Part shown: one piece after another, positions 11,369-24,839 of the stretch
How positions within the stretch are numbered: position 1 is the first letter of the stretch
Layout: every line of letters starts with the position of its first letter
Sequence record: MK308676.1
Strand: one strand, 5' to 3'
DNA length: 64,000 nt
Position numbers and translations under genes: made by a program
Notes under the pieces: generated by a model
The model's database searches: none
What the model was told of the DNA's origin: nothing
What the model saw: only the letters and a program-made list of their open reading frames with translations

Positions 11369-12889
11369 TTATTCCCCTTTCTTACGATAGGCGTTAGCGT
11401 TCTCGATACCGCCGCTCCATAAAGAACATAGACCCAGTAGTTCGAGGAAGCTTTCTTTCGAATCGATGCTGCGCACGGGAGAGAAGGTAAAGTCTTCACG
11501 ACAATAGTCCTTATCCGCAACAAACTTCATCCACTCGACTTGGTTAGGTAAGTCGTGCGTATGACGTAAGCTACCTAAGGACTGGTTGTATGAAGCCATC
11601 GCCCATAACGCGTAGGTGTGTTCTCCATCACTCTCTACAATATGCTCCCACGTGACATCGCCGTATCCCGGCAAACATGCAACTGGAACAGGCGCATCTT
11701 GAACCTTAGAGAACCGACAAGCTGCCCCGAAGTTTAGCATCTCCGCGGTTAGCTCTTGACAACCTCGAGGTACAAAGAACGCCCCGATGATGCCACTAGG
11801 GCCAGTCTTGTTGCGGCCGACTTCTACTTCCACATAGTGACCATTATGGAGCTCAACAGCACGCGAGATACGAAGGCTGTACGTAGACATGAACTTCAGA
11901 GTCTCAGGCACGCCGCAGAAGTTACCTCCCTTTTTCTCGGTCACTCCTCGAATTATAGGTACCGTACCATTACTACCTAACTGTAACATGGTCTGCTTAC
12001 TTACAGCTAAGACCTCCATTGCCATATGTGCCAACGCCAGCGTTTTCTTATTACCGGTCTCTGACATGTTAGGCATGTACAGTGTAGTGTCGGCCACGGC
12101 GAAGTCACCAGACATAGGTACGATTCCGGCCGAAGCTGCCATGCGTAAGCTGGCCTTATAGCTAGAAAGATTATTAGGTAGAGAAACGCAGTTTTCTAGC
12201 AAATATTCCGAGCGGGCTTGATGTGGGCAATCCATGTAGACGTGAATGGTCATAGGCGATGCAGTTTCCATTATCTGCTTATGCAGCCAATCGGTCAGCA
12301 AACGACGGAACACGATATATTCTTCAGATGAAGATACCAAGATATGACCATTGGGCATACCTACGTATTCTTCGCCAGAAGCGTGTACCTTTCTCATGCC
12401 GAGAAGAACATCCATCCATGTCTTAGTTTGAATCGGCATAGGTAAACGCGGGAACGTAGGGAATACCTGCCCAGCTAACCCTAGAGGCTTTACCTGTCCG
12501 GTATAGAAGTAACCGTTCCATTTAGGGTCTGCGACTATATCCTCAATATCGTCGTAGCGCTCGATATAACGGCAAAGGACACCGACCACGTGATTTAGAA
12601 GATGACTGATTTCAGAGATATTGACCTTATCGTTCATGTAATCGTCCATAGTCACATTGACTTGGTCGTCCCACTTAACGAAAACTTCACACAGGTGGTT
12701 ATTAGCGTTCACGTCATTTACCATAATGACGTCGGCCTTCACGAAATGTTCATCACGTTCGGTGATGATAACGTCTACCGACTTCGTTCCGTAGATGCCG
12801 TAAAAGTTCTCTTTTACAGGAACCAGTTCGGTTTTAAGTGAGCCTTGGTCGTTCTTATGGATAAAGAAAGATACTGGAATCTTTTTCAT
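11369..12889 (-). CDS. UvsX/RecA-fold protein with apparently degenerate P-loop
   Basis: RLPMPIQTKTWMDVLLG...GEEYVGMPNGHILV resembles the RecA/UvsX pre-Walker-A segment; GVPETLKFMSTYSLRI and VEVGRNKTGPSG resemble RecA-family C-terminal strands. No GxxxxGK[ST] found. Confidence 0.45.
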   Translation of the reverse strand: MKKIPVSFFIHKNDQGSLKTELVPVKENFYGIYGTKSVDVIITERDEHFVKADVIMVNDVNANNHLCEVFVKWDDQVNVTMDDYMNDKVNISEISHLLNHVVGVLCRYIERYDDIEDIVADPKWNGYFYTGQVKPLGLAGQVFPTFPRLPMPIQTKTWMDVLLGMRKVHASGEEYVGMPNGHILVSSSEEYIVFRRLLTDWLHKQIMETASPMTIHVYMDCPHQARSEYLLENCVSLPNNLSSYKASLRMAASAGIVPMSGDFAVADTTLYMPNMSETGNKKTLALAHMAMEVLAVSKQTMLQLGSNGTVPIIRGVTEKKGGNFCGVPETLKFMSTYSLRISRAVELHNGHYVEVEVGRNKTGPSGIIGAFFVPRGCQELTAEMLNFGAACRFSKVQDAPVPVACLPGYGDVTWEHIVESDGEHTYALWAMASYNQSLGSLRHTHDLPNQVEWMKFVADKDYCREDFTFSPVRSIDSKESFLELLGLCSLWSGGIENANAYRKKGE

Positions 12890-12894
12890 GTTAG

Positions 12895-13338
12895 TTACTC
12901 CATTCCGTCTAGGATAAGAGGGATGCTCACTTCTAGGTCAACGTCACCGTCTTCAAGATGGTATTTGAAACGTGCCTTACCTAGTTCAGCATCTAGAGGT
13001 GCGTCGTCGTTTAGACAACAGAACCAAGTCGCTCTTAGCTTGCCAGGTTCGTTAAAGTCGCTAAGTTGCAGCGGCGGAAGGTTCGCCCACGTACCGTCAT
13101 TCTCGTCCATGTCTTCCCATTCTTTGTTAAAGATGAAGTGTAGTGTATTTTCAAACATGTTGTTGATGACAGACGTAGTGGTAGTATATGCGTCCAGTTT
13201 AGACGCACGGCCATCGATGTGACAAACGGCTAGGTAGCCAGTATCAACCATCTCTACTGCACCCTTTGCGTGCTCATTTAGAAGTCCTGTCTCAGAAACG
13301 ACTTTAACAGAAACTGGATTTACTTTTAGGCCTTTCAT
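12895..13338 (-). CDS. Hypothetical protein
   Basis: 147-aa ORF, GAGG RBS. Confidence 0.7.
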   Translation of the reverse strand: MKGLKVNPVSVKVVSETGLLNEHAKGAVEMVDTGYLAVCHIDGRASKLDAYTTTTSVINNMFENTLHFIFNKEWEDMDENDGTWANLPPLQLSDFNEPGKLRATWFCCLNDDAPLDAELGKARFKYHLEDGDVDLEVSIPLILDGME

Positions 13339-13408
13339 GTTGTTATCCTCTAATTTTATGTGTCATACTCGACACGTTTTATTCACTACTATAAGGAATA
13401 GTAATTTG

Positions 13409-13960
13409 ATGCAAATGTTCTTAACCGTACTTCGCTTCTTTGTTCTTCTACCTTTCCACTGGCTTGTGACGTTGCTTTGCTACATCCTAGCTCCAGTGTT
13501 ACCTTTAACCGCTATTGGTAAAGAGACGTTACCTAAATGGCTTTCGTGGTTCCAAACGCCTGACGCTCCACTCGATGGAGATTTAGGTTTCCGTTTAGAA
13601 CATGAAGCCAAAGGAACACATCCTTATCTACAGCGCGTCTATTGGTTATGGAGAAATCCAGCATATGGTTTCTCTTGGGGACTCTTAGCTTATCAATCTA
13701 TCAAAGGAATGAAGATTCATACCTTGGGCGATATTAAAGCGAAAGATGACCCTTATAAGGCAGGTTGGTCCATTAGCTGGACTGAGGACAAGAAGGCGTT
13801 TCAAGTACGGGCGTTTGTTCCAACCATCCCTGGTAAGTGTTTAAAGTTTAGGTTCGGTTGGAAACTGCGTTGGTTAGTCAACGACTGTAACGGAATTGCG
13901 AATGGCTCCAAACGTAAGTTCGTCTTCACTTGCAACCCGTTCAAATCTCGCCGTCCTTAA
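13409..13960 (+). CDS. Trp-rich phage membrane-associated protein
   Basis: Hydrophobic N-terminus, WLSWFQTPDAPLDGD and YWLWRNPAYGF motifs. Start moved to 13409 (AAGGAA RBS). Confidence 0.7.
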   Translation: MQMFLTVLRFFVLLPFHWLVTLLCYILAPVLPLTAIGKETLPKWLSWFQTPDAPLDGDLGFRLEHEAKGTHPYLQRVYWLWRNPAYGFSWGLLAYQSIKGMKIHTLGDIKAKDDPYKAGWSISWTEDKKAFQVRAFVPTIPGKCLKFRFGWKLRWLVNDCNGIANGSKRKFVFTCNPFKSRRP

Positions 13961-13974
13961 TTAAGTTAGCCATT

Positions 13975-13998
13975 GGTCTCTTACTTCGGTAAGAGACC
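13975..13998 (+). terminator. Intrinsic terminator
   Basis: GGTCTCTTAC-TTCG-GTAAGAGACC followed by TTTTTT. Confidence 0.85.
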
Positions 13999-14053
13999 TT
14001 TTTTCTTTTTACCCAAAAGAAAAGGCCCTATTCAAAGGGCCCCGTAGGTAGTG

Positions 14054-14878
14054 TTAGTTTTCTAGTGCTTTAACTAGAGTTTTAGCTTCCGGTAGGGTCA
14101 GCTTAGATTCCAATAGGAATTTATCCAGAGCGTCACATACAGGAATCGTAGTGATGACGGTATTGTCCATCGTGATAGGCTGAGTCTTATCACGGACCCA
14201 AAGAATCTTCTTCTGACCATTGCGGAACTCGCGCCCAGTAAGCCCACACTTCTTAGAGCCCATGCGAGCCTTGAAGTTAGAGAACGATAGTGCATATGTG
14301 CCGCCATGGTTCTCTACAAAGACACCGAACTCCATGTATGCGCGTGCTAAGAACAGTTCATTGTTCTCACTGCGCATCTCTTCGCTAAAGACGAAGAACG
14401 GAAGACCTTCTTGATTGAAAGACTTATGTTCCGGGACAATAGCGGCCTTTTCACCAGCGGCTAAAATGGTGGCACCGCAGTAACGTTCGCGAATTCCGCG
14501 TAAAGCTTCAGGGTTGAAGAGTGTTGCACAAAGCTTGTTACGAACTTCCATGAGGTGCTTACGTTGCGGCGTACTCGTATCATGGGACTCGAACAAGCGA
14601 GCTTTCTCTTCATTAGCGTCGTGGCGAACCAGACACACGTTACCTTTCTGATAAGGTAAGGCATTGTCGATACGCTCAATAGTAACACTATCCTCTTTAC
14701 GTTCATCGTTCGAGAGAACCATGGGTAGGCCAGTATAATCACAGACACCGCCGTTGCGACGGAATAATTCACGCCAGTCATCGAGCGACAAGCGGAAACC
14801 AATATCACGAGAGCGCTTGCTTTGTGCTTTCGTTTCGTATTTGCGGTCCACTAATTGCTCATCGTACCATACAGACAT
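14054..14878 (-). CDS. HNH-like (beta-beta-alpha) domain protein with duplicated module, possibly T4 Srd-like
   Basis: RDIGFRLSLDDWRELF...CDYTG...VTIERIDNALPYQKGNVCLV...N; a degenerate second copy follows (YALSFSNFKARMGSKKCGLTG). Confidence 0.5.
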   Translation of the reverse strand: MSVWYDEQLVDRKYETKAQSKRSRDIGFRLSLDDWRELFRRNGGVCDYTGLPMVLSNDERKEDSVTIERIDNALPYQKGNVCLVRHDANEEKARLFESHDTSTPQRKHLMEVRNKLCATLFNPEALRGIRERYCGATILAAGEKAAIVPEHKSFNQEGLPFFVFSEEMRSENNELFLARAYMEFGVFVENHGGTYALSFSNFKARMGSKKCGLTGREFRNGQKKILWVRDKTQPITMDNTVITTIPVCDALDKFLLESKLTLPEAKTLVKALEN

Positions 14879-14962
14879 AATGTCTCCTTTGTTGGTCGTT
14901 GTAAAAAGATTAAGGTAAGAATAAGAAACCCTCATCTCCCGAAAGAGATGAGGGGGATGTTA

Positions 14963-15904
14963 TTAAGGTTGTTTAACAGAGCACTTGAATTGACGCTGGC
15001 CAAAACGAGTCATGCGGTAAGCTGCTAAGAACTCACCGACCAGTTCATATTCGAAGTCAGTATGGCCGTCACCACTGGCAGCAGTTCGAACTAACTTCAT
15101 GTCCCAACGTTTTTCGTATGCGGTCGCTCCGACGGATTCGTCCGAGATTCGAAGAATACGGTCACCGTCAGCATCATAGACGATGACGTCACCGTTCACT
15201 TCAACTGACTTACGGAGTACGTCGTTTTTATCGTACATCAATGTCATGTGCTGTTCGTAATTATCGCCGATTGAAACGAACGAGTAGAAGTCCGCGCCTT
15301 GCGCCGTATGCGTATGCCATTGTCGTGCAGACGAAATGATGTCACCGCTAACGTAGTTTACAAGCGCACTGCTGAACTCATGTCCTTTACCGCGCTTAGC
15401 AGTGAAGGTTGTCTTCGGTCCCTTGGTAGGCGTTGAAATGCAATGTGTTTCAAACCCGTCTTCCGTCATAGTAATGAGATAGTTGAACTTCTCTCTATTT
15501 TCCGTCAGGAAACATTCGTCGGCGGGTTTAGGATTAAGGCTCTTCATTGGCTCCGGATAAGAACCGAAACGACATGGCGCCTCAGGATTCTTAGGGAAAC
15601 GGAACACTTCCTTACCGTTTAGACAATGTAGTGCCAAGTCGAAGTAAACGAAACTTTCGGTCTCGACAAGAGTTCGGCAGAACTTACTGAGAGCAGAGCC
15701 AGTCAGGTGCTCCGCACCAGTTAATTGAGAGAAGTCACATTGGAACAGTTCCCATGCGTTTAGTTTAAGTACGCCCATGCGAAGGATGAAATCCATGTCC
15801 ATCTCAGAGACGTCGCTTAGAATCGCGCGCAGGATAGCTTTAGTTACAGGGACTTTAGTAAGGGCAGACTTAGCTTTAGTTAGGTCAACGGTTTTAATTT
15901 TCAT
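14963..15904 (-). CDS. Hypothetical protein, member of dispersed beta-hairpin-rich paralogue family
   Basis: Helical N-terminus followed by YD/RHS-like hairpins (LMYDKNDVLRK, VYDADGDRIL). Confidence 0.75.
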   Translation of the reverse strand: MKIKTVDLTKAKSALTKVPVTKAILRAILSDVSEMDMDFILRMGVLKLNAWELFQCDFSQLTGAEHLTGSALSKFCRTLVETESFVYFDLALHCLNGKEVFRFPKNPEAPCRFGSYPEPMKSLNPKPADECFLTENREKFNYLITMTEDGFETHCISTPTKGPKTTFTAKRGKGHEFSSALVNYVSGDIISSARQWHTHTAQGADFYSFVSIGDNYEQHMTLMYDKNDVLRKSVEVNGDVIVYDADGDRILRISDESVGATAYEKRWDMKLVRTAASGDGHTDFEYELVGEFLAAYRMTRFGQRQFKCSVKQP

Positions 15905-16009
15905 AATGATATTTCCTTTCAATATCGTTTCTTATTTTAAGAAACATTTAAGTAAAGCTGCTACGTTTTCACAGCCGAGGTACGTCCTCTTTAGGACGCA
16001 TGCATAAAG

Positions 16010-16020
16010 GTAATATAGGT
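16010..16020 (-). promoter_or_regulatory. Putative phage early promoter ACCTATATTAC
   Basis: Exact 11-mer also at 31806 and 45461, each upstream of a minus-strand block; contains TATATTAC, the phiKZ early-promoter consensus as I recall it. Confidence 0.6.
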
Positions 16021-16049
16021 GACAGTTTTTATTGAGTGACAAGCCTTTT

Positions 16050-16058
16050 AATCTTATG
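16050..16058 (+). promoter_or_regulatory. Putative late promoter AATCTTATG
   Basis: Exact 9-mer also at 45486 and 53561, each 30-60 nt upstream of a plus-strand gene; contains TATG, the phiKZ late consensus as I recall it. Confidence 0.45.
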
Positions 16059-16110
16059 GTGCACCAACGCGCTCTATCCCGACTTTGGTCGGCCTAAGAG
16101 GGAATATAAA

Positions 16111-16842
16111 ATGATTACTAATCAAAGCTTCATTACGCAGCTTTATACTTTTAGTAGCGGTACCCTGACGCCTCTCCCTTACTTCATCATAGAGGAACAG
16201 GACTACGACTACTTAAAGGAAACCGCCGATGTTGCAAGCGGACTTTATCCAATTGTAGATGAAGACATCAGTGATGGGATACGTGCCGACACAATCGGCA
16301 TACGCGACGATAAGGTCATGTTCGTACAAGGGAACGGACAAGAGATTGAACTCAAAGTTAATCGCGGCTATGTACCTAAACATAGTGCCATTCGTAACTA
16401 TAGTAAGGAAGACTTCGTTGAAGTTTCTGACGAACTATACGTAAGAAAAGAAGCAGGACGTTCCGCATGGGGTGTTGACGAATGGGTCAAGTTAAAGTCA
16501 GGACACAAGGTCTCTGAGATTTTCTACTACGATGCTCGCACTCAAAGCACGGTAGGTAAACAAGCTACAGGTATCGTGGTAATCGCAGAAGATACTCGAT
16601 TCTTTAACCGAGTCATTGTGCCGGGCGATAGCATCCTAATCGACTTCGCACATGAACTACAAAACTTTTCCTTGCAAGTAGCAGCCAATGGTTCTGTTGA
16701 GTTCACCATTGCTGACAGCATCGATATAGAAGCCATGGAAATTAATGAAGACGGTGAGTTGGTTTTTGAACATGCACTCGCTAGTTCAGACACGGCTAAC
16801 GTCTACGTCGATGACGACGGCTACCTAATCGTAGAAGAATAA
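16111..16842 (+). CDS. Putative virion/tail-associated protein
   Basis: Acidic, beta-rich; first gene of the tailspike island. ATG 16111 after GAGGG RBS. Confidence 0.7.
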   Translation: MITNQSFITQLYTFSSGTLTPLPYFIIEEQDYDYLKETADVASGLYPIVDEDISDGIRADTIGIRDDKVMFVQGNGQEIELKVNRGYVPKHSAIRNYSKEDFVEVSDELYVRKEAGRSAWGVDEWVKLKSGHKVSEIFYYDARTQSTVGKQATGIVVIAEDTRFFNRVIVPGDSILIDFAHELQNFSLQVAANGSVEFTIADSIDIEAMEINEDGELVFEHALASSDTANVYVDDDGYLIVEE

Positions 16843-16855
16843 AGAGGTAAAGGAA

Positions 16856-17410
16856 ATGGTTAAAACAGTAGTAGGTCGCATCCGTGGCGATAAGTACAAC
16901 GGCCATGATGTCAGCCAGGCCTATAAGAAACTAGACGAAGTCTACGATGATGGTAAAGCGTATGTCTGTAAACAGGACGTAGCTGAAAACTCCAACACTC
17001 CTTTATCCGATGAAACTAAATGGCAGCTCTTTGCCACCTTTACTACTTACGGTACCTACTTCACGCATGACTCCAACCGAGCTTATGTCGACGGTGACCA
17101 AGTGTGGATTGATAACAAGGTCTACGTAGCAATCGATGACATTCCAGCAGATAGTGACATCCCGTTAACGGACGATACTAAGTGGGAAGTCCGCCTTACC
17201 GGCGGAGCGGAAAGTTTGCCAGTCGAGTTAAGACATGCGATTGATTTCAGAACCGTAGATGAAGATTTGCGACAACTATCTGAAAACCTTCTTATGGCAG
17301 CTCCTACTAAACCTCCAAGATTGCCCGGACTTATAAAGGTTTGCCCTTCTTTGAGTAAGCGTTATATTTCCGTAGGCACAACAGCGGCTTCTGATTGGGA
17401 GGAATTCTAA
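16856..17410 (+). CDS. Tail-associated protein with two CBM5/12-like repeats
   Basis: Two Y..GD.V....K.Y.....I.....PL.D.TKW repeats; N-terminus paralogous to 18690. Confidence 0.65.
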   Translation: MVKTVVGRIRGDKYNGHDVSQAYKKLDEVYDDGKAYVCKQDVAENSNTPLSDETKWQLFATFTTYGTYFTHDSNRAYVDGDQVWIDNKVYVAIDDIPADSDIPLTDDTKWEVRLTGGAESLPVELRHAIDFRTVDEDLRQLSENLLMAAPTKPPRLPGLIKVCPSLSKRYISVGTTAASDWEEF

Positions 17411-18675
17411 TGACTGATATCTATCTAAAGAAAGTAGCGACCGGTTCTGGTAACGGTTCGGGCTGGGACAATGCTAAAGCGTTTACGGACTCCACGGCTT
17501 TAAGAGTGGACCTAGAGACCTTACGCGCAGGCGATACTCTCTATATCGGTAACGACTTCGGTAAACGTGACTGGCTAGAAACAGACATCCTGATGATAGT
17601 CAACGCTGTGAACGGTACAGAAGATGACCCTATCACTTTCTGTGGCTCTGCCGTAACAGACACTACGGAACTACATGCGGCAGCAAAAGGTAAGGGCCCT
17701 ATCTTCCATGGCGGGGCAGAGGCGCCGATGCGCCTAGGTGACTCAAAAGGAGTAGACTTCCTCAGAGTTGAAAGAGACCACTATAAATTCTTGGGATTAA
17801 ACCTGGTCAACGCAGGTTACTTCCTGACAATACGCAATCGTCCAGTCACTGGGATAACGGTGGCAGACTGTCAGACCTACGGAACGGAATTAGTTTTCTC
17901 TTGCGGCGCAGGAGACTCGGACGTTACTGGCTTGGATGTCTCCAACTTCATAGCTGGTAATGTCTCTGGTGGTTTTGGTCTCTTTAGAAACGGTAAGAAA
18001 TTAAGTTTCAGCGACGTGCATGTCTCCCATAGTGAGGAGACGACTGACGTCTTCGGACTAAAGTTCGGTGCAGCCGGAGATGCGAGCAGCGTAGTCGAAG
18101 AGATACTCGTCCGCGATTCTTCTTTTACAGGCGGCTATAACTTTAACGGCTCGCCTTCTTACGTTCAGGGCGACGGCATTATTGCCGAGATTGGCACTTC
18201 TGAAATAGACATCGACAACGTGCGCATTAGTCTATACGGCGATGCCGCAATTGACCTGAAGTCCACCAATGCCAGAATCAAACGTGCGGACATCCAGAGA
18301 TGTAAGTACGGCATCAAGCTGTGGGGCCTTGGCGAGAACTTAATCGAAAACTCCATCGTGAGTAACTGTTCCTTAGGTGCCATTCAGTGCATCGCTGACA
18401 TCGTGGCTAAGAACAGTACCTTTAAGGGCACGGCCGACAGTAAATGCTTATTGAACCTAACGAAGAATAACCTCGACGGGGATAAGCTGGGCGAACTAAC
18501 CCTGGAAGATTGCGTCCTGGAATATCCAGACCCAAGCCGTCTTATCTACGGCTATGCCGGTAACAAAGTACACATGAAGAACTGCATGGTGAACGGAGTG
18601 CTCATTAAAGAGACTAAGTTCCTTCTACCGGCGCAGGGCTCATTCGGCATTGTAGATGACCTAACTGACTTTTAA
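17410..18675 (+). CDS. Right-handed parallel beta-helix (pectin lyase-like) protein, putative tailspike/depolymerase
   Basis: GNGSGWDNA start; QGDGIIAE...IDNVRISLYGDAAIDLKS...CKYGIKLWG...IENSIVSNC PbH1-like repeats. TAATG coupling with GGAGG RBS. Confidence 0.7.
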   Translation: MTDIYLKKVATGSGNGSGWDNAKAFTDSTALRVDLETLRAGDTLYIGNDFGKRDWLETDILMIVNAVNGTEDDPITFCGSAVTDTTELHAAAKGKGPIFHGGAEAPMRLGDSKGVDFLRVERDHYKFLGLNLVNAGYFLTIRNRPVTGITVADCQTYGTELVFSCGAGDSDVTGLDVSNFIAGNVSGGFGLFRNGKKLSFSDVHVSHSEETTDVFGLKFGAAGDASSVVEEILVRDSSFTGGYNFNGSPSYVQGDGIIAEIGTSEIDIDNVRISLYGDAAIDLKSTNARIKRADIQRCKYGIKLWGLGENLIENSIVSNCSLGAIQCIADIVAKNSTFKGTADSKCLLNLTKNNLDGDKLGELTLEDCVLEYPDPSRLIYGYAGNKVHMKNCMVNGVLIKETKFLLPAQGSFGIVDDLTDF

Positions 18676-18689
18676 GGAAGGAGACTAAC

Positions 18690-19169
18690 ATGTCTAAAAC
18701 TGTTGTGGGTCGAATTCGTGGCGATAAATATAAAGGCCACAATCCGAACCAAATTTACAAGAAGTTGGACGAAGTCTACATTTCAGGTATGGCATTCCTT
18801 TGTCTCGAGGATATAGAGATTAACTCTAATATCCCTTTGACGGATGTTACGAAGTGGCAAGAGTTCGCTTCGCTTGAAACTCTACGTATCCACTACGCAC
18901 ATGACGTGAATGCTGAGTACTTTAAAGACGAGCAGATGTGGGTAGGCGGTAAAGTGTATGTTGCTTTAGCAGATATCCCTGAAAACTCTAATGTAGATTT
19001 AACCGACGACACTAAGTGGGAAGAACTTCTTGCTAGTGAAGCTCTTGCTCCTACGGCTAACGACAAGATTACCATCACAGGCTTTACTGACCTGGGCGAT
19101 GGTAATTGGCAAGTGACGCCCCCCTGCGGGTTACGTACATTACGTACATATTGCTGGCGCCTCGCCTAA
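18690..19169 (+). CDS. CBM-like N-terminal module of second tailspike (5' part of frameshifted gene)
   Basis: Paralogous to 16856 (KTVVGRIRGDKY.GH...YKKLDEVY); sequence becomes unnatural after the C6 run at 19119-19124. Confidence 0.65.
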   Translation: MSKTVVGRIRGDKYKGHNPNQIYKKLDEVYISGMAFLCLEDIEINSNIPLTDVTKWQEFASLETLRIHYAHDVNAEYFKDEQMWVGGKVYVALADIPENSNVDLTDDTKWEELLASEALAPTANDKITITGFTDLGDGNWQVTPPCGLRTLRTYCWRLA

Positions 19170-20649
19170 CTACTTCGCTGAAGTTTCTACTATTGTAGAA
19201 CTTTCTAAGATTGGTGACTGGACGCGTGAAGGCGGACAGCTAACTATCCGTTGGCCTTCTAACCTAAACGACCTGGACGTGTTCCTCACTATGGGTTCTA
19301 GCTCCTCTGTGGCATACTACGGCATGGAAGTAGACGAGCCTGGGGAAATCCATAACCAAAACACTTACGGTGGTTTGCGTGGCTTTACAGTTACGGCTCT
19401 GGCACATCTGTTCCATTGTAAAGCAGAGAATGCTAACTTCCACGGTTTCGATATGCAGTTCCCTGGAGCTACACTGAGTCATTGTGAGAGCCATCACAAC
19501 GGTCAGTGGGACAAAGGCGAGACAGGTAACAATGTCGGTCACGGTGTTCTTATGCGTCGTGGCGGTACAGTGCGCCACCATAAGTCATATTGTCAAGCTG
19601 AAGATGGTTACCAAATTGGTACAGCCGTTCAAGGCAATGTTGCAGAGAACGATGAGTTTACTCTGGAACACTGTGAAGCGTACTACTGTTCTGAGGACAT
19701 GTTCGATATTAAAGAGACAGGTAAGAAATTAACCATTCGTCACTTTAGAGGACATGGCGCACTCGACTCAGCAATCAACTACCACCCGAATGTAGGCTCG
19801 GGTTTAGTAGAGATTACAGATGGGCGCTTCTCAGGCACCGTACAGATGCTTCGCGTCGCTCAGGTTGAATCTAGCATCCCTGCTAAGTTCAACACTGCCC
19901 GTAATGTCTTCGATGCTTCTAACCGTGGCTGGTCAGATAGTTCTGCTCCATGTTTCGATTGGAAGGCCAGTATCGATAATGCAGATGCTTACTTTGTCTC
20001 TATGGCGGACGTTTTCATCGGCGGCGGTACTCGCGGTATCTCTGACAAGCACGTAGTCAACATCAAGGGCGCTGGTAAGGTTAAACTGTTTAACCCGACC
20101 ATTCACGTGCCTTCTACTCCGAACGCAGGAGACGTTTCTGCAATCGGTATGTATGGTACGGCCGCTGTTGAGATTTACAACGCGTGCCTAACTAACTATG
20201 GCGGTGGTACCCGCGGCATCCTTGAAGTTGACGATAACACTCGCAGTATTAAGATTGCAGATTCTGTAATGTATGTCAAAGACGGGGACGACAATACGGT
20301 CTATGTGACTGTTGGTTCGACTACCTATACTAAGGCAGACATTGAAGGTGCAAACTTCGGCGGGGAAGGCAACATCGTAGACGGTAGCGTGGAGCTAACT
20401 AATCTATACATCAAATCGCCTAACTACATGGACGAAGCTAATAACCTACTAGCTCCTCTTTACATTACGCCACATATGGCAAACCACGGTCTAGCTGTGA
20501 ATGCGCCAATGAAAGACGTAATGGGTCTACCATTCAACCACTGGAGTTGGATGGGCGGTTCTGAGAACGTTAGTATGGGCGTTGGCGCTTACCATGCCTA
20601 CAGCGGACGAATGCTCCGTGCTAAGAATTCACATACTCTAGCGAAATAA
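19117..20649 (+). CDS. Beta-helix tailspike/depolymerase (3' part of frameshifted gene)
   Basis: Frame open from 19117, not only from the called GTG at 19279. PbH1-like repeats (HGVLMRRG, EDGYQIG, EDMFDIK, DSAINYH). Confidence 0.65.
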   Translation, partial: RPPAGYVHYVHIAGASPNYFAEVSTIVELSKIGDWTREGGQLTIRWPSNLNDLDVFLTMGSSSSVAYYGMEVDEPGEIHNQNTYGGLRGFTVTALAHLFHCKAENANFHGFDMQFPGATLSHCESHHNGQWDKGETGNNVGHGVLMRRGGTVRHHKSYCQAEDGYQIGTAVQGNVAENDEFTLEHCEAYYCSEDMFDIKETGKKLTIRHFRGHGALDSAINYHPNVGSGLVEITDGRFSGTVQMLRVAQVESSIPAKFNTARNVFDASNRGWSDSSAPCFDWKASIDNADAYFVSMADVFIGGGTRGISDKHVVNIKGAGKVKLFNPTIHVPSTPNAGDVSAIGMYGTAAVEIYNACLTNYGGGTRGILEVDDNTRSIKIADSVMYVKDGDDNTVYVTVGSTTYTKADIEGANFGGEGNIVDGSVELTNLYIKSPNYMDEANNLLAPLYITPHMANHGLAVNAPMKDVMGLPFNHWSWMGGSENVSMGVGAYHAYSGRMLRAKNSHTLAK

Positions 20650-20664
20650 AAAAAAAATAAGAGT

Positions 20665-20688
20665 CCCTACTGGCCGAAGCCAGTAGGG
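20665..20688. terminator. Bidirectional intrinsic terminator
   Basis: CCCTACTGGC-CGAA-GCCAGTAGGG between convergent genes, A-tract before and T-tract after. Confidence 0.85.
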
Positions 20689-20694
20689 GTCTTT

Positions 20695-21006
20695 TTATTC
20701 GTCTTCAGACGGGAACGTCTCGTCGATTACGAGGCCTTGTTTCTTAAGAGACTTCGCTCGAGCCACAGCGACGTCGATGTGACAAACCATGTGACAAAGA
20801 AACTTAGAAGCATCGCGTTTGCCTACCTGGTGAGATTCATACCACCACTTAAAACCGTCTAGGTAAATACATGCGTTCTTATCGCCGTCTTCAGTTACTT
20901 TAAGTAACATTGACTGCGGGATAAAGAAGTCGATGTAAATATGCTCAAGACCTTGCTTCTTGGCTTTCTTGATTTGCTTTTTAACGCGCTTTTTATTACC
21001 TGCCAT
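20695..21006 (-). CDS. Hypothetical protein, basic N-terminus
   Basis: Start moved to MAGNKK at 21006 (GAGG RBS). Confidence 0.65.
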   Translation of the reverse strand: MAGNKKRVKKQIKKAKKQGLEHIYIDFFIPQSMLLKVTEDGDKNACIYLDGFKWWYESHQVGKRDASKFLCHMVCHIDVAVARAKSLKKQGLVIDETFPSEDE

Positions 21007-21043
21007 AATAGGTGCCTCTTTTATCTTAAGTTCGAAATGTTTT

Positions 21044-21334
21044 TTATTTTTGGTCGTGGTCAACCGATATGGTACAAAGGCTTAAACTAAAGTAGACCGT
21101 CTTATGGTCGACGACGCCTTTGTAGACGCGATTGATGCCGTTCTCTGTAAAGTCTTTAACGTCCGTTTTCTTTACCCAAAGATAGTGACTACCGTGTCGT
21201 CCGCAGTCGACGTACATGTGTTGTACCACGCCGCCTAAATCACGGACTGCGTCGCTAACCTCATAAGGCTTCGGGAAAGCGTCCACGTTGAAAGAAGATA
21301 GGCACAGAAGTAGTAAAGCGAATAATTTTTCCAT
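21044..21334 (-). CDS. Small secreted/periplasmic protein
   Basis: Signal-peptide-like MEKLFALLLLCLSSFNVDA; two Cys in the mature part. Confidence 0.65.
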   Translation of the reverse strand: MEKLFALLLLCLSSFNVDAFPKPYEVSDAVRDLGGVVQHMYVDCGRHGSHYLWVKKTDVKDFTENGINRVYKGVVDHKTVYFSLSLCTISVDHDQK

Positions 21335-21398
21335 GGTGTTCTCTCTTTAAGATAGAAATGATTAAGCTCCCTCTCCCGAAGGAGAAGGAGTACTTAGT

Positions 21399-23231
21399 TT
21401 ATACGGTGAACTTGCTTAGAGCAACACCTTGCTCTTCACATAGTTCCATTACTTCACCCAGTTCGTCTTTAGACTTAGCAGAGCCGTCAGAGATTTCCTG
21501 AGATAGGTCTTTCACTCGAGTAGCGTTGAGGTTAATCTCATTGCTTACAAGCGATTGCTGTTCTGATGCTGTAGCGGTCTGAATAGACATGCTGGTAATC
21601 TCAGAGACAGCTTTAGAGATGTCGTTAAGGTTAGAAGCGGCAACAGCTGCTTTATCAATTGCCCCATCCGTAGAAGCCTTACCGTCCTCAATGGTCTCAA
21701 AGACTTCTTGAGCGTGGTTAGTAATCTCTTCTAGAATGGTATTGATTTGAACTGTGCTTTCTTGCGTATCCTTGGCTAGCTTACGAACTTCGTCTGCTAC
21801 CACTGCAAAACCTCGACCTGCATCGCCTGCACGTGCTGCTTCAATTGCTGCGTTAAGTGCAAGTAAGTTGGTTTGGTCTGCCACGCCAGAAATAACTTCC
21901 AGTACTTCGGTGATACTTGCCGTAGAACCGATTAGGTTAGTAGTAGTGTTTACAGCGCTCTCCATTACTTCACCTACGTGAGTAATAGCCGCTGATGTAG
22001 CTTCTACAGAATCCAGACCAGAACGTACAGAGGTTTCTGCCTCTTCTGTACTAGCCGCGGTAGATTGAGCATTAGATGCAATCTCTACGCTAGATGCTGC
22101 CATCTCTTCCATAGCTGAAGCTAGTGACTCTAGCTCTGCCATTTGTTCAGTTACATTGCTTACGTTCTGAGTAGACACTGCTCCCACAGAGATGACTGCA
22201 TTACTAATGCCGCCAGATATCTCTTTAAGGCGCTGTACGTCTTTCTGAAGGTTCGCAGCAAACGTATTGACAGATTGTGCCATGGCAGCAAACTCTTCGT
22301 CAGAGTCTTCGCTAATGCGTTTAGTGAGGTCTGCTTCACCAGAAGCTAAATCCTGTAAAGCATTGCGTAGTTCTTGAAGAGGACGCATTAGGTACATCGC
22401 TGTTACAATAGCTAGACCAGATACTACAGCAGTGGTAATACCGGCAATGATAAGTAGTAGTACAAGTAAGTCTTTGACTGGCTGCTCAATAACAGAAGTC
22501 GGTTTCTTAACGTCTACTACCCAACCCGCAGAAGGAATAGTAACTAACACAGTAGTCATTTCTTCTTTAGGTGCTTTCTGCTGACGGATGTTCTTGCCGA
22601 TTAAGTACTCGTCTTTATGTGCAATGATGTTACTCGTTGCTTTACTGTAAAGGACAAGTTCCGTACCGTTAACATGAGCAATGCGGTTTAACTCATCGCC
22701 TAGTTCGCCTAGGTTAGTATCAAAGAACACAGCACCGTCATTCTTACCGTTCTTGTAAACAGGAATGGCAATTGACGTTACGAGTTCTTGAGTGGCTAAG
22801 TCTACGTACGGTTCAGTTTGGATAGGTTTACCCGCAGCTATTGAGTCCTTGTACCAGTCGCGTGTACGGCCGTCGTAGTTCGCGGGCATACGGCTTTCCG
22901 GTACAGACGTAGTAAACTCACCTTCGCGGTTTACATAACCCACCATGTCGAAAGCATTCAGTAGAGTAGCTCCCTTTAATAGGTGGGCTGCTTCTTCCAT
23001 ACTTTCGGTTTTGGATAGACCATCTGCGATAGCTTTAGCTAAAGTCATGTTGCCGTCTAACTGTCCCGTAATACGAGAAGCCATGTTGTCGGCAGTGAGT
23101 GAAAGAGAATCTTTAGCATTCTCTAGAATCTGTTCTTTCTCGACTTGGTAAGTAACGCCGGTCAGAACACCGCCCATAATCAATGGGATAATAATAAATG
23201 ATGCGAATAACTTAGTCTTAAAATTAAACAT
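21399..23231 (-). CDS. mcp: Methyl-accepting chemotaxis protein (TM1-dCache_1-TM2-HAMP-signalling domain)
   Basis: Signalling tip [37 protein letters not shown]-type (here VADQTNLL...); [28 protein letters not shown]; methylation EE/EQ pairs; dCache YDGRTRDWY...EPYVD...FFD. Start moved to 23231 (GGAG RBS). Confidence 0.95.
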
Positions 23232-23266
23232 GATAGTTCTCCGAAATACAAAAAGGAAAAGAAGCA

Positions 23267-23296
23267 ACAGTAGCCAACCGCATGGTTGGCTACTGT
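23267..23296 (-). terminator. Hairpin/terminator between YadA-like gene and MCP
   Basis: ACAGTAGCCAAC-CGCATG-GTTGGCTACTGT; T-rich run follows on the minus strand. Confidence 0.65.
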
Positions 23297-23331
23297 ATAT
23301 GCTTACAGGTAGCTCTCTTGAGAGCTTGTCA

Positions 23332-23772
23332 TTAGTAGCTGTATGCTACGCCAGCACCTGCTGCTACATCTTCAAAGTCGCCGCTCACGATTGTAGCTGC
23401 AACGTGAACTTTACCAGTCCAGTTTTCGTTGATGCGGTATGCGCCACCGATTGCTAGAGCTTGTGCGTCACCTGCTGTACCAACACCGAAACCAAACTTA
23501 CCAGTTTCAGCGTCAATAGTGGTGTGTGCTTTAGCGCCGTTACCTAGGTCAGTCTCAGTACGGATTACTGAGTCGTTACTTTCCACAGGCATGTTAGCTA
23601 GACGTGCAGCTTCTAGGCGAGCGCCGCGTTCTAGTTCTAGGTTGGCGTAGAAGTCGTCAGAGACTTCAGTCATTACAGTTGCGTCAACAACGTTAGAGTT
23701 GCAGATACAGTTGTCGTTTGCGATAGCAGTAAAAGAAGTAGATAGTAGTAGGGCGATTAGTAGGTTTTTCAT
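23332..23772 (-). CDS. Minimal YadA-like trimeric autotransporter (signal peptide, short stalk, 4-strand anchor)
   Basis: [18 protein letters not shown] signal; A..AA.LA.MP linker helix; FGFGVG...[14 protein letters not shown]...AGAGVAYSY anchor ending in an aromatic residue. Confidence 0.8.
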
Positions 23773-23897
23773 AATAAATTCTCCGATATGAAAAAGTACC
23801 CTAACTGCATCAACGCAGTTAGGGCATATGGCAAAGATTAAAGGGACTTAATTGTCCAAGCTCACTATGATAATATGGGTTTTAGATTTCCTTGAAA

Positions 23898-24839
23898 TCA
23901 AATCTCCACGTCATCGTCAGGCTTCCACCCGAAGATAAGTTCTTTTCTAGCGTTCTCTAGCGCATTGAAATCAGGCAAGCCGTTAATAGGGAAACGCATG
24001 CTGGTACTGTAAGAAGCATCGCCTTCATAGATGCGGTCTACAACCATACAAGAGCCATTAAGGCAGTAATAGCCCACGCGGCGGCCCTTATCATCACGCA
24101 AGGTAATCTCTTTGAGGTCACCCGCCAGAGAAGTAAAGATAGAACCATCGCCTACGGAAAGGAATGACTTCGGAAACTCTCCGTCTTCACGTACCTGATG
24201 GCGGTATCTTAAATCGCCCGCATGGAAGCGGTCACGGATAAAGATAGTCGGTAACGCATCTTTATGACTAATCTCTAACTTCTCAGTGCGGCCCGCCTTA
24301 CTTAGCACTTTAACGCATTCTTCAGGTGCTACTGGCGGCTCATGTACTGCTTCCGCTAACTCTCCATTATCGTCCCAAGTTTGACGAACCGTTGTTTTAA
24401 GTTCGCCATCGCAATACCATTCTCTTAGCACAAGACGTTTACCGCCACAGGAGAAAAGTTTCACACAGAGAACCTCACGGTCTTCGTGTGTGTATTTGGT
24501 CTCCACGCGATAGATGCCCGCACCTTCATGAGTAATAGTACGTACTGCTTCCGTTACTTCAGGGCGGTCGTTAAAGACTAGCGTTGCCTGGGCGTCCGGT
24601 AAGCAGAAATGGAAAGCTTTAACGTGCTGACCGGTTTCATCCCACGTACACCATGCACCCTTCTCTAATACTTCGGCTACTTGGTCTACCCAAGAACCTT
24701 CAGCTAGAGCCGGCATATGGCGAAACTGAATTAGTGCGTGTTCGCCCATATGGTTTCGCATGACCTCCCCTGTTTGCGGAAGGTCTAGCAACTCTAAGAT
24801 TACTGGCGGGATTGAATATAACATATCGTTATCCGACAT
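23898..24839 (-). CDS. Hypothetical protein, dispersed paralogue family
   Basis: 313 aa; hairpin repeats (TWDDNGELAE, LRDDKGRRVG). Confidence 0.75.
   Translation of the reverse strand: MSDNDMLYSIPPVILELLDLPQTGEVMRNHMGEHALIQFRHMPALAEGSWVDQVAEVLEKGAWCTWDETGQHVKAFHFCLPDAQATLVFNDRPEVTEAVRTITHEGAGIYRVETKYTHEDREVLCVKLFSCGGKRLVLREWYCDGELKTTVRQTWDDNGELAEAVHEPPVAPEECVKVLSKAGRTEKLEISHKDALPTIFIRDRFHAGDLRYRHQVREDGEFPKSFLSVGDGSIFTSLAGDLKEITLRDDKGRRVGYYCLNGSCMVVDRIYEGDASYSTSMRFPINGLPDFNALENARKELIFGWKPDDDVEI

Follow-up and report, generated by a model that had tools for sequence, protein, structure and literature searches.

Does a lytic jumbo phage carry genes that change how its infected host behaves? The question is raised by positions 21044-23880 of a 64,000-nucleotide stretch of sequence record MK308676.1, which we call the window. 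Three consecutive genes occur there, all on the minus strand, whose products are predicted to be exported: a small protein with a YadA-type anchor (g1), a chemoreceptor (methyl-accepting chemotaxis protein, MCP) and a 96-amino-acid (aa) protein with a signal peptide (g3). An initial annotation of the locus suggested that these genes may be one envelope module that alters host behaviour. The envelope-directed products and the early-promoter-type motif that it described are indeed present. The idea of one system found no support, and the three genes are linked by position only. The reading that we favour, and to which we give about an even chance, is that the block is one predicted early accessory unit, and that its core is a working amino-acid chemoreceptor that would enter the host array and retune the swimming of the infected cell. 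Under this reading, g1 and g3 would be independent envelope orphans.

The region is 100% identical to the Vibrio mediterranei jumbo phages vB_VmeM-Yong XC31, XC32 and MS31 (each ~290.5 kb), and positions 12000-21000 match MS31 exactly. Nearly all of the 318 genes of the Yong phage are annotated as "hypothetical" in GenBank. The Yong phages have been grouped with BONAISHI and pir03, which are jumbo phages carrying multisubunit RNA polymerases, and relatives of the Yong phage have two such polymerases (PMC7765460). We found one further relative in metagenomic data. It consists of two contigs (976 and 1802 nucleotides) from the same sequencing run, SRR31214396, and our statements on synteny and selection rest on these. 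Scans of IMG/VR with all three proteins yielded no relatives, and a scan of JGI metagenomes yielded none either, the only match being one distant bacterial MCP.

The phage chemoreceptor

The MCP gene (21399-23231, minus strand) encodes a transmembrane chemoreceptor of 610 aa. Pfam searches and alignments divide it into a first transmembrane segment (TM1), a periplasmic dCache_1 domain with an amino-acid motif, a second transmembrane segment (TM2), a HAMP domain and a signalling domain. Its start is most likely the ATG at 23231, as in GenBank, and not a TTG at 23267 that lies inside a hairpin. The Pfam E-values are 1e-20 for dCache_1 (residues 46-230), 4e-10 for HAMP (residues 289-341) and 1e-39 for MCPsignal, and PF00015 scores 136 bits (cut-off 34.6). 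Hydrophobic segments at residues ~5-30 and 251-282 flank the sensor, which corresponds to the classical class I topology with two transmembrane segments.

The nearest cellular homologues are PctA-type receptors of Vibrio, Photobacterium, Marinobacter and Pseudomonas, at 31-39% identity. In the dCache_1AA domain of PctA, the motif that binds amino acids (AA_motif) comprises Y121, R126, W128, Y144 and D173, and 13-17 residues separate the two halves of the motif (PMC8915833). The phage MCP has all five residues (Y119, R124, W126, Y142 and D171), and 15 residues separate W126 from Y142. The sensor domain also matches solved sensor domains, with E-values of 1e-22 for PctA and from 7e-16 to 2e-14 for PctB, PctC, Mlp24 and Mlp37.

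The cytoplasmic part is equally well preserved. Residues 453-483, which form the signalling tip, are almost entirely invariant in comparison with six cellular MCPs. From HAMP to the C-terminus (after residue 285), there are no insertions or deletions relative to PctA, whereas alignment with E. coli Tsr requires gaps on both arms. We take this pattern to be that expected of the longer receptor class used by the chemotaxis arrays of Vibrio and Pseudomonas. The conserved tip and the equal length of the signalling domains in the phage MCP and PctA suggest that the phage protein could couple to the host CheA/CheW array. A methylation-site pattern finds 2 sites in the phage MCP and 0 in PctA, and so is not a valid test.

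The phage MCP thus has the same order of domains as PctA, PctB and PctC of Pseudomonas aeruginosa and Mlp24 and Mlp37 of Vibrio cholerae, along with their motif residues. It differs from them in being encoded by a lytic jumbo phage, in being at most 39% identical to any cellular protein and in having a shorter membrane-proximal sensor module. Its ligand class is predicted from the motif.

The 1802-nucleotide contig of the relative covers the last 376 MCP codons. Over these codons, the two proteins are 96.5% identical, and dN/dS is 0.04 (dS 0.47, dN 0.019). Judging from this ratio, purifying selection on the MCP in phages is strong. Codon usage of the MCP gene and g1 fits that of the phage genome better than most phage genes do, with the MCP gene at the 85th percentile and g1 at the 99th, and the GC content of the block is that of the genome. 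A recent capture from the host was rejected on the basis of this phage-like codon usage and of the low identity to every cellular MCP. Altogether, the protein looks like a functional, complete and phage-adapted chemoreceptor of the PctA/Mlp amino-acid-sensing type. Because it is intact and under strong purifying selection, an effect on the behaviour of infected cells is a reasonable inference.

Under the favoured reading, the MCP would be made soon after infection and inserted into the inner membrane, where it would join the polar CheA/CheW array of the host through its canonical signalling tip. The swimming of infected cells would then respond to amino acids as the phage receptor dictates. 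A different use of the same protein would be as a jammer. Large early amounts of it in the array would lock the output of the kinase and so fix or stop swimming, whatever the ligand. The intact signalling tip and HAMP domain, the shortened membrane-proximal module and the position of the gene in a unit of early-promoter type all agree with jamming. However, a jammer that is blind to ligand would have no need of the full amino-acid-binding motif, which is kept, although selection was measured on the C-terminal 376 residues only. The two terminator-like hairpins upstream of the gene also argue against very high expression. We regard jamming as rather unlikely.

In a tblastn search of 50,697 phage records, only 5 matched the MCP at all. 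Apart from the Yong phages, the only records with a match, which is to the signalling domain, are Pseudomonas phage Y13 (OQ572414.1) and MH445380.1. The latter record (126 kb) is named Escherichia phage P1, although it is much longer than the P1 genome, and annotates an aerotaxis receptor. The HAMP and signalling part of the MCP matches the PHROG family phrog_8572 (5e-74). Virus-borne MCP genes have also been listed as auxiliary genes in viruses of sulfate reducers (PMC9448743) and in Nitrosospira phages (bioRxiv 10.64898/2026.05.02.722434, a 2026 preprint). These earlier cases resemble ours in that an MCP gene is on a viral genome. They differ in being database families, or metagenomic or listed annotations, without demonstrated function. 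The Yong MCP, by contrast, occurs in a cultured lytic jumbo phage, with an early-type promoter, purifying selection and a sibling that carries a natural deletion.

The predicted unit and its promoter-like site

The genes are arranged in a predicted unit in the order promoter-like site, leader hairpin, g1, hairpin, MCP, hairpin, g3, g4 and strong terminator, and all reading frames are intact. The last gene, g4 (20695-21006, minus strand), encodes a lysine-rich protein of 103 aa with no hydrophobic segment and no signal. It adjoins g3 without an intervening hairpin, and a search of PDB sequences with it found nothing significant. The upstream 313-aa and 298-aa open reading frames (ORFs) also lack hydrophobic segments, in agreement with the cytoplasmic neighbours that had been described. 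The run of three exported or membrane proteins is real but not strongly beyond chance, given that ~20 of the 315 ORFs in the genome have N-termini of this type and that other clusters of membrane proteins occur.

The variant early-promoter motif reported upstream of g1, ACCCATATTAT, is present at 23870-23880. This motif alone is not above chance when 2 mismatches are allowed. Its 38-nucleotide context is more informative. We built a matrix from 10 sites in the genome and scanned the XC31 genome with it in pieces, which were not joined. The matrix recovers ~24 promoter-like sites genome-wide, 23 of them on the minus strand, and the g1 site ranks 11th. At 30.8 bits, its score exceeds the highest reached in any of 20 shuffled versions of the window, and also that of one of the sites used to build the matrix.

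The site (23862-23899, minus strand) consists of a TTCAA box, 8 nucleotides, AAAACCCATATTATC, 6 nucleotides and a G at 23863, and it overlaps the stop codon of the upstream 313-aa ORF. The TTCAA box has the same spacing as at canonical sites. An exact 15-mer, AAAACCTATATTACC, has three copies in the window, all on the minus strand, and the g1 site differs from it at 2 of 15 positions. The variant core of the g1 site recurs at position 124139 of the XC31 record. In the relative, the promoter-like site is 100% conserved.

The cores of the Yong sites also occur in promoters predicted for phiKZ-like phages (PMC7058600, Table 2). In AR9, early promoters that were mapped experimentally and that are used by the injected virion polymerase consist of a core, 6 nucleotides and a G (PMC5312081). 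The Yong sites fit this layout, which places the predicted transcript start of the unit at 23863. Like the phiKZ and AR9 promoters, they have an A/T-rich core of the TATATTAC or ATATTAT type, and they are over-represented, with many intergenic copies oriented in the same direction as the genes. Two differences are an additional upstream TTCAA box with an AACC run, and the presence, in a subset of Yong sites that includes that of g1, of a terminator-like hairpin before the gene. By analogy, we infer that the g1 site is an early promoter of the phiKZ/AR9 type, and that the unit would be transcribed early. A scan for sigma-70 promoters gave counts no higher than in shuffled sequences.

The initial annotation had raised the hairpin between this motif and the first gene as a caveat. 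The hairpin is there, but it belongs to a recurrent layout, and is not an argument against a promoter. Of 23 sites, 6-7 show the succession of promoter, hairpin and T tract. Among them are all three whose core is ATTAT, and these three share a short box between core and hairpin. In detail, the ATTAT-core sites (23862-23899 in the window, and ~124040-124165 and 286200-286330 in XC31) show the core, ~20 nucleotides, the conserved box, a GC-rich hairpin and a T tract. The two that lie outside the window clearly repeat one another. The leaders of such promoters could be attenuating leaders or RNAs of ~70 nucleotides.

Hairpins had also been reported between the genes. They are present, and are far more stable than shuffled sequence; the four in the unit have folding energies between -19 and -27 kcal/mol and z-scores between -4.1 and -7.3. 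The leader hairpin (23797-23826, minus strand), which has a T tract, is located between the promoter-like site and g1 (-20.4 kcal/mol, z -6.2), and its stem is identical in the relative. A perfect 13-bp hairpin with a T-rich tail separates g1 from the MCP gene (23267-23296, minus strand; -27.4 kcal/mol, z -7.3). Between the MCP gene and g3 is a 10-bp hairpin with a weak tail (21367-21390, minus strand; -19 kcal/mol, z -4.1). In the relative, a hairpin of different sequence occupies this last position (-20.6 kcal/mol, z -4.0). The unit ends 3' of g4 with a bidirectional terminator-like hairpin (20665-20688; -22.3 kcal/mol, z -5.5), which is the only terminator in the unit with a long, strong T run. 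The internal hairpins would probably grade expression along the unit.

Some further searches and one structure can be noted here. No tRNAs occur near the block, Rfam gave nothing above its gathering scores, and PADLOC found no match to a defence family. A short stem-loop at 15980-16000, just after a canonical promoter-like site (16003-16017), also occurs in the relative (1525-1550 of the longer contig). As the stem-loop is kept while the sequences differ, the changes are compensatory.

Two envelope orphans beside the receptor gene

The product of g1 (23332-23772, minus strand) is a predicted exported protein of 146 aa with a C-terminal membrane anchor of the YadA type, and thus resembles a miniature trimeric autotransporter. 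The Pfam family YadA_anchor (PF03895) matches residues 91-145 with an E-value of 3e-10 and 40.4 bits (cut-off 22.7), covering model positions 9-59 of 60. The protein also matches the structure of the YadA membrane anchor (PDB 2LME, E 0.007), and it ends in an aromatic residue. In trimeric autotransporter adhesins, anchors of this type supply four beta-strands. Its C-terminus matches the C-terminal ends of PHROG families named "adhesin" and "tail". The predicted signal peptide, which like that of g3 was recognised by eye in the sequence, has a basic residue, a hydrophobic core (Kyte-Doolittle 2.09, weaker than that of g3) and then A-I-A.

The passenger of g1 is only ~70 residues long. It contains no passenger domain of Pfam or NCBIfam and no recognisable head, neck or stalk. 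An AlphaFold2 model from the single sequence (pLDDT 39), which is too poor for use, has one helix of ~20 residues located ~30 residues before the anchor. Since no passenger domain was found and this low-confidence model predicts only the one helix, we call g1 a predicted outer-membrane YadA-anchor protein and do not file it as an adhesin. Among 5.8 billion proteins, g1 has a single relative, and a search with the anchor only found no relatives.

The Eib proteins, which are of prophage origin, offer a comparison. They are trimeric autotransporters of E. coli (PMC13534694). As with g1, a phage-borne gene encodes a protein with a YadA-type C-terminal anchor. However, Eib proteins are several hundred residues long, have a head and a stalk, bind immunoglobulins and are expressed from lysogens, whereas g1 is far smaller, lacks these recognisable parts and belongs to a lytic phage.

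The 96-aa orphan g3 (21044-21334, minus strand) was recognised as an ORF with a hydrophobic N-terminus, and its predicted signal peptide has a hydrophobic core (Kyte-Doolittle 2.59) followed by V-D-A. The mature protein, of ~77 aa, is presumed to be periplasmic, and its two cysteines are both kept in the relative. No family in Pfam, PHROG or NCBIfam matches g3, and a search of PDB sequences found nothing significant. An AlphaFold2 model from the single sequence (pLDDT 54) was too poor, and Foldseek with it against PDB returned nothing at E ≤ 0.001. Among 1.84 billion representatives there is one real homologue (P0123, 52% identity). A second match (P0124) was dismissed as a repetitive protein aligned over ~30 residues.

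Do these two proteins act together with the MCP? The initial annotation had proposed that synteny in related jumbo phages be checked, and the outcome is mixed. The 1802-nucleotide contig carries the MCP codons, a hairpin and the g3 homologue in the same order as in the window. Directly 3' of g3 it continues with a canonical promoter-like site and a homologue of the gene at 14963-15904, and it lacks g4, the terminator and the plus-strand block at 16036-20690. The 976-nucleotide contig contains the end of the 313-aa gene, the intergenic region and a g1 homologue. In the intergenic region, 121 of 125 bases are identical to the window, and the motif and the hairpin stem are unchanged. Over its first 95 residues, the g1 homologue shares 89% identity with g1, but it stops at 101 aa, without the anchor domain. 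Thus, the order of the 313-aa gene and g1, and that of the MCP gene and g3, are kept in one relative, while the anchor and g4 are absent and the start of a further gene for a secreted protein is present. This start (positions 836-976 of the contig) lies 3' of the relative's g1, has a clear signal peptide and has no similarity to the window; the gene may carry the anchor domain in the relative.

Divergence along the block is uneven, at 96.5% aa identity for the MCP, 89% for the N-terminal part of g1 and 52% for g3. In comparison with the relative, synonymous sites are saturated in both g3 and the 313-aa gene, while dS is 0.47 for the MCP gene, and the region is therefore a mosaic.

These data bear on the proposal that g1, the MCP and g3 are one integrated host-behaviour system, in which g3 would be a periplasmic co-sensor or modulator of dCache and g1 a surface component, and in which adhesion, motility and superinfection would all be changed. 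Such integration would suit three predicted envelope-bound products encoded on the same strand behind one promoter-like site. It would also suit the two gene pairs on the contigs of the relative, in particular g3, which directly follows the MCP gene in both phages, with a hairpin kept between. Nevertheless, the g1 homologue lacks an anchor and precedes a different secreted-protein gene, the divergence is very uneven, each gene has its own following hairpin and the cytoplasmic g4 is in the same unit. Moreover, neither g1 nor g3 has any cellular homologue, so no cellular MCP locus contains them. We therefore hold an integrated system to be improbable. Most simply, g1 and g3 are orphans and independent accessory genes that share the unit with the MCP. 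In the reading that we favour, g1 would be a very small YadA-anchor protein of the outer membrane and g3 a small disulfide-bonded periplasmic protein.

The roles in adhesion and superinfection that had been suggested for the module are pure conjecture; the g1 passenger is of the small size given above and has no recognisable head or stalk. Alternatively, g1, g3 or both might protect the phage itself, by masking receptors, by excluding superinfecting phages or by keeping progeny off debris, with the MCP as an unrelated passenger. Small, early phage proteins of the outer membrane or periplasm with such roles are well known, for example T5 Llp and T4 Imm and Sp. The two genes are both phage-specific orphans, and g3 evolves fast, as expected in an arms race. 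Set against this are the lack of homology to any known exclusion protein or defence-related family (PHROG, PADLOC), the missing membrane anchor in the relative's g1, and the absence of both genes from the sibling isolate MS32, which is described below. Self-protection is unlikely, in our estimation.

An accessory segment missing from a sibling isolate

The sibling isolate MS32 (278 kb) is 99.98% identical on both flanks of the locus but lacks one segment of 12.4 kb. Genome comparison places the outer bounds of the missing segment at 11369-24839, the extent of two ORFs that become fused, and these bounds enclose the whole cassette and its promoter-like site. The deletion starts within a 506-aa ORF (11369-12889) and ends within the 313-aa ORF (23898-24839), and leaves a single annotated in-frame fusion coding sequence (CDS) of 349 aa. 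A deletion between long direct repeats or paralogous genes was rejected: similarity at the junction is very short and imperfect, and the fused ORFs are not paralogues. Together with the whole cassette, MS32 has lost an HNH-like gene, two genes for beta-helix proteins and two promoter-like sites.

Homologues of g1, the MCP, g3 or their neighbours were not found outside XC31, XC32 and MS31 among the 50,697 phage records. The cassette region is a lineage-specific accessory segment that the phage can lose, and the block is dispensable, its absence from MS32 meaning that it is not required under the conditions of isolation. The 313-aa ORF and the ORF at 14963-15904 have no homologues outside the Yong phages, so synteny with BONAISHI or pir03 could not be examined.

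A dispensable block might be decaying cargo with no role in infection. The survival of MS32 as an isolate after the deletion, and the lack of the block in any other cultured phage, would be in keeping with decay. Decay would not, however, account for a dN/dS as low as that of the MCP gene, for reading frames that are all intact or for codon usage that is fully adapted to the phage. Nor would it account for a promoter and leader region that is nearly unchanged in the relative when the flanking coding DNA is saturated at synonymous sites. We consider decaying cargo very unlikely.

Several points weigh against the favoured reading itself. The loss of the block in MS32 shows that the phage does without it under isolation conditions. 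Assignment of the promoter to its class relies only on analogy. Between the promoter and g1 there is a strong hairpin with a T tract, and another precedes the MCP gene, so transcription of the MCP gene may be low or may depend on an unrecognised promoter. The membrane-proximal module of the sensor is ~15 residues shorter than in homologues. Finally, there is a single relative, and synteny and selection are read from two short contigs.

Other genes near the block have features of their own. The plus-strand block at 16036-20690, which contains two pairs of an adaptor and a beta-helix gene, is absent from the metagenomic relative, as are g4 and the bidirectional terminator, and all of these are also inside the MS32 deletion. 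Since the region at 16036-20690 is missing from the relative and is also within the deletion, it is a hot spot of gain and loss. A gene at 16856-17410 is followed by a beta-helix ORF at 17395-18675. In the window, as in MS31, one frameshift divides a second, tailspike-like beta-helix gene at 18690-20649 (plus strand) into ORFs of 159 and 456 aa, and its counterpart in XC31 is annotated as a single intact CDS of 652 aa. Over its first 118 residues, the product of this gene shares 56% identity with the beginning of that of the upstream gene at 16856-17410. An ORF at 14054-14935 (minus strand), also inside the segment deleted in MS32, matches an HNH endonuclease family of PHROG (1e-43), and its N-terminal part has further matches, to families that carry the names sigma-70 decoy and Srd anti-sigma factor. 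Elsewhere in XC31 (159279-160095, minus strand), two adjacent ORFs resemble a spanin pair, one having a lipoprotein-type N-terminus (cysteine after L-L-S-G) and the other an N-terminal membrane segment.

The analysis documents a genome-wide family of promoter-like motifs in the Yong phage, and a recurrent layout with a terminator-like hairpin after the promoter. MCP genes of viruses were known from earlier work, though they had not been characterised, and among them the Yong MCP is unusually well equipped. Its sequence shows all the hallmarks of function, and its ligand class can be predicted. Selection keeps it in a phage lineage, an early-type promoter precedes it and a near-identical sibling lacks it. 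Such a combination is seen in few of the viral MCP genes that have been reported.

Whether lytic phages manipulate the behaviour of infected cells, beyond their metabolism, is a largely untested question. In its fullest form, the idea would be that a lytic jumbo phage steers its infected host: an early chemoreceptor would redirect swimming towards sources of amino acids, such as lysing or dense host populations, while g3 tunes the sensor and g1 alters the surface. We see this as a doubtful proposition. If it were true, the near-identical phages MS31, with the block, and MS32, without it, would provide a ready-made natural comparison.

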